A DNA stretch of 63,525 nt, filler included, from Choristocarpus tenellus KU-1152 (Eukaryota > Protista > Phaeophyceae), in the NCBI GenBank assembly GCA_964200185.2. It is 11 parts of 11 records of this genome, joined end to end, with 100 filler letters (N's around TTAATTAATTAA, not from the genome) between each part and the next. Parts side by side here need not be neighbours in the genome. Positions count along the whole stretch, not along the records: positions 60,991 to 63,525 come from CAXNAD020026979.1; 10 more parts are not named here. One strand, given 5' to 3'. Numbering within the stretch: position 1 is the stretch's first letter; each line of letters begins with the position of its first letter. The position numbers were made by a program, and so were the translations under genes. Shown piece by piece: positions 1,612-63,525 of the stretch. The notes beneath the pieces were generated by a model, which saw only the letters and a program-made list of their open reading frames with translations, was not told the DNA's origin and ran no database searches.

Positions 1612-3105
1612 AATGTCCCACCACATCAATTATCGAAAAGAAAGCATATAGATGAATGAATCAGAAGACAGTCACAACCCCAAACAATCAACACCCCTCG
1701 CTATGAGAGGATACCTCAGTGTGGAGTGACGGGAAATGACTGTCATTTTCTTGTATGAGTGCCATGATATTAGTGATAATGAATACTATCATTGTTGTTT
1801 ATCCTCCTGTCATCATATATTTCTCCAGCCATTTACACCGTCACTATTACTACTACCTCTACTACTCCTGTGAGTAAGTGAAGAATACAAGCCGTGTGGG
1901 GGGTGCTGGAGGTAATAAACCACATACATTAAAAACTGTTGACATATACACACACTTGAAGAAACAGTCTCAATCACGACAACACTGAAAGACGAGCACA
2001 CTGTCCTCTCCAATTCCTCGAAATGCAGTAGTATAGATGCACACACGCATGACACCATGCCAGCAGAAGCCTTATTTTGCCCAGGCTCCTTGTCGGCAAC
2101 ACAACCCCTTCCAACAAAAAATGCCCAATCTTATTGTTCCAACCCCAAAACTATATGCTTTTTCAGATTTCAATGTTTGAAATCTCAGTCTGGTCCTAAA
2201 AAAATGAGTCTGCATTTATTTAAAGATTCAATATTCTGTTACTCTCAAGACGAGCAGGTAATCTCCCCAATGAAAATTTGCACAGAGTATATAGTCATCC
2301 ATTGTCCTCGGTTCACCCCAGTCCACCACAAAATGTTTGCGGTGACTTTGACTGTATGTTCTATGGAACACCTATGCTCCGCAAATACCCCCCCCATCTC
2401 CCCTTGTGTAAGATATGATCACACATAACATCCAGGGGATGCTGTTTCTGTAAAGCATGTGCCATGACTGACTGTAAAATCTACCACTATATCGAGGCCT
2501 CAGCCAGGAGAGACTCTTAAAACCATATTGTTAATCGGTCTAGTACCTCCCAGGATTGTTCTATTTATCATTCCAACTAACCACCTCTCTGCTTCATCAC
2601 CAGGTTTATTCACAATCCAGAGAGTTACACAACAATCAACTGCCTCTTTTTGTATTGAGCATCTGCATTTGAAGCCATGACAAACAGCCTTTCCGATGCA
2701 AGCAAACAGGAGAGAAACTTTGCCTTCTCAAACCCCCTACTACAAAGGTCGCGATCATATCCAACCCTACAACTTACCCTTTGCTCACCATCCAGAATGC
2801 TTCCCCTATCTAACCCTAACCCTAGACATGTACTTGCCTGTTGATGTTATCTAGTTCTATGGTACAGCTGTAGGGTAGTCCCGGGAGCAAGGGGAGGGGG
2901 ATATGACAAAAAACCTCCAACTTATTCACAAACTGGTGAGGCTTGTACCTAATACTGAAGTACATTATAAGATACCTTCATCCTGCAAGCCTGACTAATC
3001 CTAGCACCAAGTATTATTTATCTTGACAAGAACTAACGAGTGTGCGGTGCTGCTTCTTATGCCTATTGTTGCTGGCGACCATTCTTATGACGACTAGTTT
3101 TTGAA

Positions 3106-4441
3106 TCAAGACCGTTGGTCTGCTGCTTCTGCAGTCCTATTGCCTCCATCGAAGAGCTGATGTACTCCTCCCCTCCCCCTTGCCCCACCAACAGCATTCT
3201 CCTGACGTCTTGAGGAGGTGTGATCCCTTTCATCAGCGGGTACTTTGAAGGTTGTTGCATGCTCAGAAGAATCCGTCCTAGGTGTTGCATTGGACAATTG
3301 TCTCCGCAGAGATAGCCTCCTGTGAGAATTCGTGACTAGACCTGCCGCAGCCAGGCTGGGCCTAATGGCAGAGGGATTAGTTGTGGAGCTGGTGGTGGTA
3401 TTGTTCGCAAGCAAATGCGGTCTCATTCGCACCTCCTCTGATTTTTCCGTGCTGCTGCCCTCCTTGATCTTGTCCTCACTCCTTCTCCTACCCCTTGAAT
3501 CTTTATCCTGTTGTGTTGAGTTAGGGTTGATCAGGGAGGAGGAAGCAAGTCAGGGGATCGAACCTCTGAAGTAAGTACCCACTGGCTGCAGTGTGGTCCA
3601 AGTGTTGTAAACATGTTAAGACCGTTTGATTGCTGTAGCTTATGTTAGTCTAGACATGAGGCAGAGACTAGAACATACACCACTTAGAGGGTAGCATCTA
3701 TATATGCTATGCAAAGGTACGTCAGAGGTGTCCAAGGGTGGAGATGGAGTAATCCACTTGACTTGACTGACTGATTGATTATCACACATAAGTTCTAAGT
3801 ACGATGCAGTGATGTTGAAGGAAGCAGCTTAAAGCAAATTCAACAAGCGGTCAGAAAGGCAATGCAAATGAGATTTCAATAAAAAAGACACACCATGTGT
3901 GTCAACAACAGGCAGATTTTTAGTTGAGTAAACAGATACATGACATTACAATATATATGAGTGAGTCTCTCAGCATAGTACCAACTATGCGACCAGTATA
4001 GTGCAGCTCAATTTCCCGTTGTGAGCATTGGACTGCAACGTTACAAAAAGCAACTTAAAAGAGATTATGCACAGTAAGGATCTGGTGCATGTGTCTGAGG
4101 TCAAGTTACGGTCCTACTCGTATCAAATCTACCTTTAAAAAGGTGATGCAAACAATACTGTCCTACTGCACAACAGAGGCCCCACAGCCAATTGGCAACT
4201 GAGACCACAACTCCATCTCAAACAACACTGAGCATTGGAGAGCTCTATGTAGCTAAAGGCGGAAACTAAGCCCAACACTCACCTGTCTCTCCACGGCAAG
4301 CATGGGATTGAGTGTGACACCGAGGTCCGACCCCTCCGAGTCCGAGGGCTGTTCCTCACCCCCCTTGCCCCCAATTTCAACACCAGAAGCCCAACTCTCA
4401 CTGTTGCCGATTGCACTGAAGCGTCGACTGCTCCCCCCCCC
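3106..4441 (-). CDS. Last two exons of an unknown low-complexity protein
   Basis: Open exon 4441-4283 ends in CAG|GTGAG. Acceptor CAG with an upstream CTAAC at 3508 leads to exon 3507-3106 (DKDSRGRRR...AADQRS*), phase 0. Confidence 0.5.
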
Positions 4442-12539: not shown

Positions 12540-15139
12540 CCTTTCTGTGACTGAGTGAGTGTGTGTGGCGTTGTGGGCTGACAATTGTAACTTTTTTTTA
12601 TGAATACTCTTTTGACCGAATCTTTTTCCTTTTTGTGGATACCATTACCACTCCATACCTTGGCACATGAATCTTGCACTTCGGAAGCTGGTCGTGACTG
12701 AGTTTGACCGCCTACAACTAATTCCATTGGAAGTCACTCATCACAACTAGCTGAGGATTCACTACAAGCGGAAGTACACACACCTGCCTCTATTAGTCGA
12801 CCATGTGTGCATCCCCTGCCTAGTGAGGAGGGGAATCAACTAGATGCATCACAAGAGAAGGTGGCAACAAAACGCATGTACCACTATGTAGTAAGACATC
12901 CAGCTTCGTCTTTGCACTACCTCAATACCACTTGGTGTCATTTAAGTCAGAGGTGGACGAGTGGGAAGTAAAGAAACACACTCAGAAACTGCCTGGAAAG
13001 AGTTGAGAAATGGGGAAAGAGAGGACTTCACGCCTACAACCATACATGGTACTTGACCATCATCACAATTATTTCAATACACGAAAGCCTGTATCTCGAC
13101 AACAAAGTGCCCAATCATTGTTCTTACTGCTCATATCGTAGAGCTGGTTCTTACTTGCTGTTTGTTGAACATTGGTATATATACTACAATTATCCAATAA
13201 TAATATGTGCTTCCTATCTCTTGATTCTGTGTGACTAGACAAATAAGGCTGACTTTGTATGTATATGCCCTCTCAAGTCACTCTGTTGCTGTTCAATTCT
13301 TGTTCAAGCTTAGCCCCTTCTCCTTCAGTATGGTTGTACTGAGTTGGATTTGGGGCTAGTCCACACAGAAGACGTTTTCTAGGATTAGGAATCCAACCTT
13401 CGTGATAGCTAGGACTTTAAACTGAACCAGCAGTTAACCAGGCTTGTCCGCAGGTCAGTCCCGTCGCATTTCCTGAACTGCCCGCTTGGGTCAATCAAAA
13501 GACACAGGACTCATGCTGGCCTGTGGGCCGATCCTATCTATTTACTTCACCTCGACTTGGTCCAAGAAAATCACTCTTTTCCAGTGACACTCCATTCAAA
13601 AAATGTTTAGATCTCTCGGAGTCATGACCCAGGTTGCTGGAAGAATGATCTATTGACAATTGATCTAATACTCCAAAAAGTTACCAAAGTATACAAGTAC
13701 TACTACTGTAGTACAGGCGTTTTCCAAAAATATGATACCAAATGTACGCAATAGTAGTAGTAGTATATACTTTGTGTAACAGACCAAAGTCAGAACACAC
13801 TTTCATTTATAATATACTTCCAGAAAAAGTAGATTGTATACAACCCTACATATTTTTCTACTTCCTCCGTTCGGAATTAAATTTTAAGCCAAGTGTTGTA
13901 AATCGTTTCACATTACAACGTATATAGCAAGCATTTATCTTTTGACTGAAGAATAAAATTATTTCACTTGTTAGTATACCATGTTCTTACATTGTTTCAA
14001 CACAAGAATTTGTTTTGAAGACGTGAGAATTCATTACGCCTGTCAACCTGGAAAATTAATAGTTGTATTGTCGCACGTTTTGCACTTCTTACTTTCTGCG
14101 CACATTCATGCATGCAGTCGGACTAAAACTGGGATCCGGCCCACACCTCGGCCCTGCCAAAAATTCCTACAGCCCTGGCTTGTCCAACCATGACAAAACA
14201 AATATTCCAAACCAACTCAAGGCCCAGCCCCATCACAACAACCTGTAAAGTCCTACAAGGTACACTTGAACACACACATGAAATACACACAAGCAAACAA
14301 TACAAGAGCCAGGCACCTTTGGGAAAGAACATCCACCTCTTGCAATGTGGTACATCCAATGGATGCAACGAACCTCAGAAAAAGGTAAATCAAACGATGA
14401 CACCTGCCCTGAACTATAGAATGTGCATAATTTCCCCTACAGCTCCAGCTTGAAACTGAACCAGCCCTATAACCCATATGCCTGAAGGGCGCTCTAAAAT
14501 ATTCCATGCGGATTATACTTCAAAAAGAAACAAAAACCATCAAAAATCCTTAGTACTAACTACTGTACTGTTTTGTTGAAAAATACACACAATACAAAGC
14601 AAGAAAAAAATTGTATACTACTCCAAGAAAGGTCCATAAAAGAGTATGTAACCAATCTATTGCCATTGTTTCCTGCATCTTCCTAATTTGAATCAAAGAA
14701 CAAAAGAGACAACACAAAAGCACACTAAGAGGTGCAAGCTCTGCTGTACTACATACATACTGAGAGCTTGTGCCCACACTTGACTTGAGCATAAAAAGAC
14801 TACTCTTGCCACATTCCATCTAACTACTTGAAGTAGGGGGGCAATACACAACACTCAGTGCTATAATGAACGCCCCCTGTCCTATGGGAACATTCTCTTG
14901 CTGTGGGAGGCACAGGGCATGCACTCCTCCGCAATAAAGCAACAAACAACAGATTTGCAGTAAGCTGAACCCTTCATACTGCTCCACCACACTCCTTCAA
15001 CTACACAAGATGTTGACCGCTCTGTGTGTAGGGTTCCTGATGTATCACACAAAATAGGACTCCATGAGCACCACAAAAAATTCCACCTTGCTTCTGCCTC
15101 ACTCTCAGGTCTACCCTAGCTCAACACCCCTTGACACAC

Positions 15140-60890: not shown

Positions 60891-61370
60891 NNNNNNNNNN
60901 NNNNNNNNNNNNNNNNNNNNNNNNNNNNNNNNNNTTAATTAATTAANNNNNNNNNNNNNNNNNNNNNNNNNNNNNNNNNNNNNNNNNNNNTTCCACGTGA
61001 GAACCTGAAGGTGAAATGCAAGCAAGTTAATTTCGAGGCGGGGGCGAAAGAAGCGAAGTGGATAAGCAGGATATATATGCAGGCACATGCTCTGATGCAT
61101 GTATATGGAAAAATCAATATGAAATTTCGCGATGCGTACATTTTTTGTTCATTGTTTTGTTTCGAGAGTATGTTACGAAACAGTTTAGGCAGCTGCTCTG
61201 GTAGGTAAATTTCGTTGTGGGGAAATCAAAAGCCAATCGATCAATTACAGTGTGCAACCATGAACCTTCCAGGAATGCAACAAGCGTGGGCTGCAAGACT
61301 CGAGGCTTTATCTGTCCGTATAAGAACACTATGTGGCTATCGAACTTGCATATATATCTTGCCTAATTAC

Positions 61371-63145
61371 CTTGAGAACATAGGATCGATTTTGATGTGC
61401 GTGTGCCCCACCATCATAAAATGTATCTCGACAACACGAATGACACTCACCGCAACCAACAGCCCCGCGTATCCGAGAAAGAAATTGTTCTTGTTCTCTG
61501 AGACGCAGTTGTCGACCTGGCCAGTTTGGGGAGTTGGGAGCGAGGGAGGGATGAGCGTGAGGCCAATATGTCAGCCCATTTCGCCGCGTTTCGTGGAGGA
61601 ACAGGGTAGGTTTCCAGTATTGCAAGGGCGCAATCTCTACATCACCACCATAATACATGCAGGTTGCAATACACAAACCAAAACTAAAGACCGTGCAGTT
61701 AGTTACTTGGTGACTGGTATTCAGCGAGTATGTGTTGAGTAGGTCGTGTCAAGATGAAACCTTCTTACCTGCCAATGCGCGTGCTGGATGATGCAATTCC
61801 CCGAGTCATCGAGGCTGTTGCGGTACTTGTCGATAAGCCTTGTGAGGGCAAGGTGGGTGGCTGTGCAGACAAGGTTACAACCTGCGCGAACAATGATGTT
61901 CAACAACTGTTGGCAAAAAGTACTCTGCTCATTTACGCATTGTTTATTTGGAGCTAAAAAGAGGGGTAATGTAATTTGTTTATGCAATGTAGAGGACATA
62001 CACCCATACGGCTGATGTACATGTCTGCGATCTCCACTACCCGTTGATTAGCTCTTACACTACTCTACAGTACGTACCTCCTCCAAGATTGATAGGAGTG
62101 AAGAACACCTCCGCGAACTGGCCTTCGACGTGTGCGGCCATGATCTTCTGGCGCTCGGAGTAGCCCCTCATAAGGGGGACATGAACGAAAGGAACATGTC
62201 AAGAAAGGTCATCATGATGAACGGAATAGGTAGTGGAATTATGTGCGCTTGTTTTGGCGATTATTTCTTTGGACTTTGCACTCATTCGTAGAGTAAAACA
62301 TGGTCGTCTATTCTGTTCCACGTGCGGCTGCAATGTTCTTGTCGGATGGACTATGCGTGCATGTGGTTACCTGTCACCGCCGTGGGTAGGTGGGTAAAGT
62401 GCTAGGAGGGCGTGTGCTGTCTGGTTCGCGGCGTCTACGGACATGAACACGAAGCCGAGAGGTTTGCTGTTGGCTTTGGCCAGCATGGCGTTGCTGGTGC
62501 TGTTGGCAATGACCAGCCGATCTGCTTTGATAATCTGGCGAATGGGGGACAGCAACATCACGTGAAATAATCAAATAAATTTGCTCAAAGCTTTAAAAAA
62601 AAAATGCCGCTTGTTAACACGTATCAGGTTAGTTAGTAACCTAAATGTAGTCTGGGTAACAATAGATGTTAGTATTGGGATATGTTTTTATTGCTGAGTT
62701 CAAGACAAACACAGTGTTATCGGGATGGTAGGAAGTACGCACGTACCGGGCCGGGAGACCACTACATGACCTGTCCCTCCCACAGCCCGTTGTACACTAC
62801 CAGGAAGCAGTCTGTCTTACAAGGTGTTTGGGCAGCTAATTACAGCAAGTTTCGCGGTGAGTGAGGCTACTGCTGCTGCCATAAACACCTACGTGGGAGT
62901 CTTCATTCGCGAAAGAGGACACGGATTTACTTCAAAACGGAGGGCAATGACGGTGACATGTTGTCACTGTACCCTTGTTGCAAAATTTACGCTGGACACC
63001 TACCTGTCGATGGTCTGACAGCTCCTTATCGATGGACTCGAAGACGGTGGAGTCGTTCGTGGGTTTTTGCATCAGGTGCACCATGCCGCTTCTCTTTTAA
63101 CGTGGCACATATGTCACATTTCATAAACTCGCCTCCTACTCTTAC
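61371..63145 (-). mobile_element. Intron-containing DDD transposase (Sola/DUF7869-type), probably inactivated
   Basis: Exons 63145-63004, 62534-62371, 62166-62078, 61881-61769 and 61516-61371 join at GT-AG sites with consistent phases (0,2,1,0). Product: VRVGGEFMKCDICATLKEKRHGAPDAK(frameshift)PTNDSTVFESIDKELSDHRQ|IIKADRLVIA...FVFMSVDAANQTAHAL...|GYSERQKIMAAHVEGQFAEVFFTPINLGG|GCNLVCTATHLALTRL...HAHWQ|VDNCVSENKNNFFLGYAGLLVAVSVIRVVEIHFMMVGHTHIKIDPMFSR. The FxKCxxC, QxDNCxxENKN and VGHTHxxID motifs match this transposase group as I recall it. Confidence 0.82.
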
Positions 63146-63364
63146 GAGTTGAAGTATCTTAGAGGGTACGAATTTGCCATGTTTGTCCATTTAGGGCTTG
63201 GCTTCCCATGGGTTTCTTAATGACATTTTTCCATTCCAAAATGTTTCGGAGTAGGTCAAATGTATACATTATGAAAACGTATGTCTGGAACAAGGATACT
63301 AACACTTCCTAACAAACATGGTAGCCAAAATTAAATCAAAATCGCAACATTGGATTTTGGCCCC
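63146..63364 (-). mobile_element. MITE family A copy, interrupted by a family B copy
   Basis: Starts GAGTTGAAGTATCTTAGAGGGTAC and is colinear with family A until ...GGATTTTGGCCCC, where family B begins. Confidence 0.88.
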
Positions 63365-63525
63365 GACTCAAAGTATCTGGGAAGGGGTGGCGGCTGTCCA
63401 TTTGGGGCCAATTTTTTAATGTCGCGATTTTTGGGTGATTTGGTTGCATATGCCGGATGGATAACGTGTGTGCACTTTCCTGGTTATGATCCAAATGGAC
63501 ACCATGGTGTAGACCCCCCTCCCCC
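63365..63525 (+). mobile_element. MITE family B copy nested in family A (cut by the window end)
   Basis: GACTCAAAGTATCTGGGAAGGGGTGGCGGCTGTCCATTTGGGG...GGTGTAGACCCC, colinear with 12367-12539. Confidence 0.88.

Follow-up and report, generated by a model that had tools for sequence, protein, structure and literature searches.

The closest described relative of the locus analysed here comes from Ectocarpus, whose curated transposable-element library contains the transposase Sola1-1_Ec32_tpase#DNA/Sola-1 (Genome Biol 2025, PMC12477816). The element itself, Sola1-1_Ec32, is 21.5 kb long, with 282-bp TIRs (AACCG..CGGTT) and a 4-bp TSD, and its label reflects the authors' best blastp match, to Repbase Sola1-1_PPa (PMC12477816). 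The same 2025 study reported Sola-1 elements and intron-rich transposase genes for Ectocarpus, and such intron-rich genes are normal in brown-algal DNA transposons (PMC12477816). The summary of one further paper lists Sola1 among RNase H-like families. Also relevant is the Pfam family PF25273 (DUF7869), to which Pfam assigns no function; the name 'DUF7869' was not found in the literature searched.

Choristocarpus tenellus is a phaeophyte. The window, a stretch of 63,525 nucleotides from its strain KU-1152 (assembly GCA_964200185.2), ends with a part of contig CAXNAD020026979.1 (positions 60991–63525), which we read on the minus strand by three-frame translation. This part very probably contains the central third of the gene for a Sola1-type transposase, in a non-functional copy belonging to a multicopy, intron-rich DDD family. 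It is a further member, from an early-branching brown alga, of a Sola-1 kind already known in brown algae. A preliminary description of the locus had considered a poorly described lineage, a label at odds with the Sola-1 elements and intron-rich transposase genes reported from Ectocarpus in 2025 (PMC12477816). Because these were already known, and because the copy in the window is judged dead, the current picture is unchanged; what is added is a broken member from an early-branching alga and an explicit link between DUF7869 and Sola1.

Exon–intron structure

On the minus strand, GT..AG sites of matching phase connect five open segments, and a fifth intron leads into the start of a sixth exon:

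63004–63145, minus strand: remnant of exon 1, reading VRVGGEFMKCDIC...LSDHRQ and including GEFMKCDIC, frameshifted by +1 in the A-run at 63064–63068
62535–63003, minus strand: intron 1, 469 nt, GT..AG, skipped by a contig of run X3
62371–62534, minus strand: exon 2, IIKADR...SVDAANQ...GGD, with the first putative catalytic Asp
62167–62370, minus strand: intron 2, 204 nt, X3 joint 62165>62370 (cut +1), same junction in gene model P0003
62078–62166, minus strand: exon 3, GYSERQKIMAAHVEGQFAEVFFTPINLGG, with GYSERQK...FFTPINLGG
61882–62077, minus strand: intron 3, 196 nt, X3 joint in two contigs, same junction in P0003
61769–61881, minus strand: exon 4, CNLVCTATHLALTRL...HAHWQ, with CNLVCTAT
61517–61768, minus strand: intron 4, 252 nt, X3 joint in two contigs, inside the catalytic core
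61371–61516, minus strand: exon 5, QVDNCVSENKN ... VGHTHIKID, with the second and third putative catalytic Asp
61005–61370, minus strand: intron 5, 366 nt, GT at 61370 and AG at 61006–61005
60991–61004, minus strand: start of exon 6 (14 nt, ..FSRG), ending at the edge of the part

Exon 5 reads QVDNCVSENKNN..FMMVGHTHIKIDPMFS, with VDNCVSENKNN. The motifs FMKCDIC, DHRQ|IIKADR, SVDAANQ, QVDNCVSENKN and VGHTHIKID, which the preliminary description had singled out along with three candidate catalytic Asp, lie at family-conserved positions in both a profile of 25 relatives and an alignment of 69, and all three Asp of the DDD triad are kept in this copy. The intact protein would have about 700 residues, of which the analysed part would cover roughly residues 265–530, and its gene contains five or more spliceosomal introns. 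The N-terminal ~260 codons, and everything beyond the first codons of exon 6, lie outside the analysed part.

Four public runs of one study contain parts of the sequence, and we aligned their Logan contigs at ≥90% likeness. Contigs of run X3 skip 62535–63003, 62167–62370, 61882–62077 and 61517–61768, which are exactly introns 1–4 (GT..AG, minus strand), and X3 depth on exons is 10–100 times that on introns; from this depth profile and the joints we infer that X3 is RNA. Runs X1 and X2 show flatter, DNA-like depth and none of the intron 1–4 joints, and the intron 5 joint is absent among the 15 joints listed for the contigs of the X runs against the window. As contigs were accepted from 90% likeness, the spliced forms may derive from paralogues rather than from the copy in the window. 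Nevertheless, these exact junctions are found in spliced sequences of an RNA-like run, so some copy of the family in the genome is probably still being transcribed and spliced correctly. The five GT–AG exons with consistent phases had first been put forward from the sequence alone, with RNA junctions named as a check, and the X3 contigs, taken as RNA, bear them out by removing introns 1–4 exactly. Short-exon, intron-rich transposase genes of this kind, which ORF-based scans miss, are recoverable and checkable via spliced contigs.

A further donor had also been noted beyond exon 5. This GT at 61370 pairs with the acceptor at 61006–61005, and the resulting exon 6 junction is backed by the paralogous gene model CAM9909099.1 (P0003; FSR|FSRG) and by an Ectocarpus relative (P0022; ..FSRFSVG..). 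We considered whether intron 5 might be an 'introner'-type insertion with target duplication (GTTCTCA at both intron ends) and rejected this reading, given that relatives read FSRFS there (P0022) and that the entire intron is common to the paralogues. The intron contains a 19-nt inverted repeat (61063–61081 and 61347–61365; 89% complementary) with TTA on both flanks, and, inverted repeat included, is 88–90% identical to two further C. tenellus contigs, L001 and L002. This inverted-repeat unit, of about 300 bp, resembles a Tourist-type MITE. A recent MITE insertion was likewise rejected, the repeat being present in both L001 and L002 and its depth not above that of the gene; the inverted repeat is old or non-mobile.

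Intron positions in other brown algae

Intron positions across brown algae had been named as a second check, and introns 1, 2, 3 and 5 are found at matching positions in three further brown-algal lineages. Just the exons align to a 698-kb ENA contig from another organism (L003), at 74–87% DNA and 69–90% protein identity, while its introns are unalignable; introns 1–5 all stand there at the same positions as in the window. Exon 2 has 69% amino-acid identity to L003 9152–9316 (E 3e-22), and exon 3 reaches 90%. Ectocarpus sp. 12 (L004) and Sphacelaria (L005) have introns 1, 2, 3 and 5 at these positions and lack intron 4, with exons 4 and 5 contiguous at L004 3271–3522 and L005 9229–9501. This contiguity marks intron 4 as lineage-specific, present in Choristocarpus-type copies and L003, which implies a gain or loss within the transposon lineage.

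Inverted repeats with arms of 109–120 nt (88–96% complementary) bracket the Sola1 gene of L003 at 2115–3064 and 13367–13670, ~10–11 kb away from each other, and the left one consists of three tandem units. These repeats are candidate termini of a large element comparable to the 21.5-kb Sola1-1 of Ectocarpus; no clear TSD was found at these long inverted repeats.

Family membership

Similarity searches were run on each exon separately. Exon 5 alone matched PF25273 at 68.1 bits (E 9.8e-19; profile positions 65–113 of 192), far above the curated gathering threshold of 26 bits, in agreement with the DUF7869 membership proposed in the preliminary description. In the paralogue L002, exon 6 (1604–2041) carries on the DUF7869 match over profile positions 113–190. 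Pfam gave no match for exons 1–4 individually, nor for the L001 and L003 equivalents of exons 1 and 2; the PF25273 model spans only the C-terminal half of the core.

The remaining exons were placed through relatives. A phmmer search of 1.84 billion representatives with exon 5 returned 573 proteins at E ≤ 1e-3, the best named matches being unnamed proteins of C. tenellus, Sphacelaria rigidula and Ectocarpus sp. 12. Against a profile built from 25 long relatives, exons 1, 2, 4 and 5 are collinear (positions 182–215, 233–256, 302–314 and 329–377); exon 1 matches at rFakCdvC (E 1.3e-4), and SVDAANQ of exon 2 aligns with the family motif siiiDgaDQ. Exon 3 is matched by a Sphacelaria protein (P0021; tblastn, E 1.2e-4), and exon 4 by the stretch immediately before the DNC motif in 12 relatives (phmmer, E 6e-10 to 8e-4). 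In one distant DUF7869 protein, the 681-aa P0060, an OTU-like cysteine protease domain (PF02338, E 1.7e-7) lies at the N terminus.

Compared by eye, motif by motif, the five exons are all collinear with the Sola1-1_Ec32 transposase:

Exon 1: GEFMKCDIC in the window, GDFMLCKIC in Sola1-1_Ec32
Exon 2: SVDAANQ in the window, MMDGANQ in Sola1-1_Ec32
Exon 3: GYSERQKI..FFTPINLGGG in the window, GYGERAKV..FFAPQILGTG in Sola1-1_Ec32
Exon 4: CNLVCTAT in the window, TNLVATAL in Sola1-1_Ec32
Exon 5: QVDNCVSENKNN..FMMVGHTHIKIDPMFS in the window, VQVDNTVAENKNN..FMMVGHTHIQIDQIFS in Sola1-1_Ec32, with 26/49 residues identical by eye

The shared order is F-x-x-C-x-x-C, D-G/A-A-N-Q, GY.ER.K...FF.P, NLV.TA, VDN..ENKNN and FMMVGHTHI.ID..FS. 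Both copies also have a brown-algal host and an intron-containing transposase gene, and exon 5 identity is ~53% by eye. The two differ in that Sola1-1_Ec32 reads VDNTVAENKN where the window has VDNCVSENKN, indicating a diverged lineage, and in that its TIRs and TSD are known, whereas the copy in the window is broken and fragmentary, with its ends outside the analysed part. Nor does the 2.5-kb part show a ParB-methyltransferase accessory gene.

The collinearity of motifs points to DUF7869 as the C-terminal half of the core in Sola1 transposases, with the collinear placement of exons 1, 2, 4 and 5 on the 25-relative profile as supporting evidence of a formal kind, and the DUF7869–Sola1 link made in the preliminary description gains an Ectocarpus protein with the same motifs in the same order. 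Homology to a Sola1 transposase is carried here by that by-eye match, to a protein classed by its authors' blastp. A DDE/D transposon of DUF7869 would also account for the exon 5 match if DUF7869 were broader than Sola1 or distinct from it, so that the Ectocarpus label could not be transferred, and this reading draws on the fact that the link was made by eye, not by formal comparison with Repbase Sola1 proteins, as well as on the absence of the DUF7869 name from the papers searched. We nevertheless regard it as unlikely, since a curated library calls a protein with the same motifs Sola-1 (blastp to Sola1-1_PPa, 4-bp TSD; PMC12477816) and since the placement of Sola1 with RNase H-like families, as given in the other paper's summary, agrees with the structural model described below. 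Under the Sola1 assignment, DUF7869 would gain a concrete reading as the core of Sola1 transposases, with an RNase H-like DDD fold.

Conservation and predicted fold of the catalytic core

Across the 69-relative alignment, the Asp of DNC and the motif GHTH are invariant, the Asp four residues further on is nearly invariant, and DGxDQ is conserved upstream. An AlphaFold2 model of a full-length relative, P0052:309-704, built from this alignment (pLDDT 91.4, pTM 0.87), has the fold order beta1-beta2-beta3-alpha-beta4-alpha-beta5-alpha. In it D92 (VDGADQ) falls on beta1, D177 (VDNC) immediately past beta4 and D219 (HADID) on the helix that comes next. Foldseek matches of the model to the PDB are weak (best E 4.8e-4) and all RNase H-like, and the best 40 hits in VIA-align are without exception integrases, transposases or nucleases of the RNase H-like type. 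Retroviral integrases, Mos1, Metnase, IstA and TnsB form the group with Z of 9.6–8.1 (SIV integrase 9.6, Mos1 9.3, IstA 8.4), and Hermes scores 6.9.

With Mos1, SETMAR, IstA and HIV/SIV/PFV integrase, the modelled core shares the RNase H-like fold and the placement of acidic residues (on beta1, past beta4 and on the helix after it), at a sequence identity of just 4–14%; what sets the family of the window apart from these solved DDE/D enzymes is an N-terminal helical/Cys region and a beta-rich region at the C terminus. Together, conservation of the Asp residues, the model fold and the VIA-align matches place a DDD triad on an RNase H-like core and argue that the family is a DDD transposase. By this model, PF25273 corresponds to the part of the core from beta4 to the C terminus.

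Carried over to the gene of the window, exon 2 supplies the Asp of strand beta1 (VDxxxQ), and exon 5 supplies both the Asp that comes right after beta4 (DNCxxENKN) and the one on the following helix (GHTHxxxD); a conserved F-x-x-C-x-x-C / His-Arg helical region lies ahead of the core (exons 1–2). Catalysis by the three Asp is predicted from fold and conservation, and if the enzyme works like other DDE/D transposases, it would use a two-metal-ion mechanism to cut the element ends and rejoin them.

Paralogues and the question of a host gene

The contigs L001 and L002 of the same assembly match the gene at 91–94% DNA identity, introns included. Counting substitutions only, identity to the window is 94–95% in exons and 92–93% in introns, a near-neutral divergence. 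Seven distinct products match exon 5 at 71–90% identity (phmmer), and thousands of contigs in X1–X3 match at ≥90% likeness, giving the multiple dispersed copies expected of a Sola1 element. Two annotated proteins, CAM9909099.1 (contig CAXNAD020017192) and CAM9835172.1 (P0001), share exon junctions 2–3, 3–4 and 5–6 and the MITE family with the window; the former, annotated on L001, is an independent spliced gene model that joins the equivalents of exons 2|3, 3|4 and 5|6 at the same places. It also uses a dubious mini-exon within intron 4. Gene models such as CAM9909099.1 can be flagged as transposon fragments.

Once-domesticated status had been offered in the preliminary description as an alternative to an autonomous element, and a transposase-derived host gene that recently turned into a pseudogene would explain the host-like intron density, the intron positions conserved across brown-algal lineages and the existence of spliced sequences. 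However, being rich in introns is normal for the transposase genes of DNA transposons in brown algae (PMC12477816), thousands of contigs reach ≥90% likeness, and at least two further contigs of the same assembly are 92–95% identical, with exons and introns diverging alike. MITE insertions differ between the copies, and each copy has its own defect. In L001, for instance, introns 1 and 3 each hold a MITE, the third Asp is replaced by N and the frame changes upstream of GEFMKCD, lesions unlike those of the window. (The coding sequence upstream of GEFMKCD at L001 858–1002, ELYKDFCKEAIQVYPDDPSERVSKEYFLRLLREDRPKSG, is in another frame than exon 1.) The combination of a single locus, an intact ORF and exons kept more than introns was not found here. 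Many copies, near-equal exon and intron divergence, and differing MITEs and lesions form the pattern of a mobile element rather than that of a host gene; the copy in the window belongs to a multicopy transposon and is no domesticated gene, and we give the domestication reading very little credence.

Lesions of the copy in the window

Two features follow exon 1 towards the end of the analysed part:

63146–63364, minus strand: 5'-truncated MITE copy, inserted in exon 1
63365–63525, no strand assigned: partial MITE copy, inverted relative to its neighbour and cut by the edge of the part

The A-run at 63064–63068 has one extra A compared with L001 and L003, both of which read exon 1 in one frame (L001 905–1129, ..GAPGVKPTNNSTVLNSIDKELSDHRQ; L003 8765–8905). 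Exon 1 is further interrupted by the MITE at 63146: homology to L001 ends at 63145, and the same stretch is continuous and in frame in L001. The start of an upstream ORF (MDKHGK..) therefore falls in MITE sequence. Judged from the +1 frameshift and the MITE in exon 1, the copy is dead and cannot make a transposase. Extra base and MITE had both been cited to this effect from the outset and hold up, but the third point, IDP in place of the usual IDQ, is weak evidence of decay because the position is variable (Q in 105/139 relatives, and P also in the Ectocarpus relative P0022).

The two MITE copies meet head to head at 63364/63365, forming a large palindrome at the edge of the part. At 63364/63367, 90 or more contigs per run depart from the window, and the palindrome may be a rearrangement or a mis-assembly. 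Were the extra A and the MITE junction also assembly errors, the copy could still be functional; the frameshift does sit in a homopolymer run, and the palindromic MITE arrangement could be mis-assembled. Yet the MITE junction at 63146 lies within conserved coding sequence, the copy has diverged by 5–8% from the paralogous copies without any excess of exon conservation, and among the contigs listed none has this copy without the extra base. A functional copy is therefore highly improbable, and we treat the copy as dead.

The 257-bp MITE family

In its full form the MITE is 257 bp long (GAG..CTC), with terminal inverted repeats of ~45 nt (GAGYCAAAGTATCTTAGAGGGTA...TCCATTTGGGGC). The copy at 63146–63364 is 79–84% identical to L001 1469–1688, L001 2474–2693 and L002 3064–3277, and that at 63365–63525 matches a reverse-orientation MITE at L001 1469–1726 (inverted repeats I6 and I10). 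L001 carries two MITEs (1469–1726 and 2436–2692), in introns 1 and 3, at sites that are empty in the window (~62650 and ~61940), and L002 carries one at ~3040–3300. The terminal motifs of the MITE were found in none of L003–L005.

It is conceivable, though doubtful, that the family, strongly transcribed and correctly spliced, is still active, that intron 4 was gained or lost since the Ectocarpus/Sphacelaria split and that the 257-bp GAG..CTC MITE is its non-autonomous partner. If true, this would offer a tractable case of intron turnover and of MITE–autonomous pairing in a Sola1 transposon. The MITE's TSD is 4 bp (GACT) at one clean site and 3 or 4 bp at two others, and its summed contig depth is ~10–20 times that of exon 5, the deepest bin of the gene (runs X1–X3). 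Insertions of this MITE recur among the Sola1 copies.
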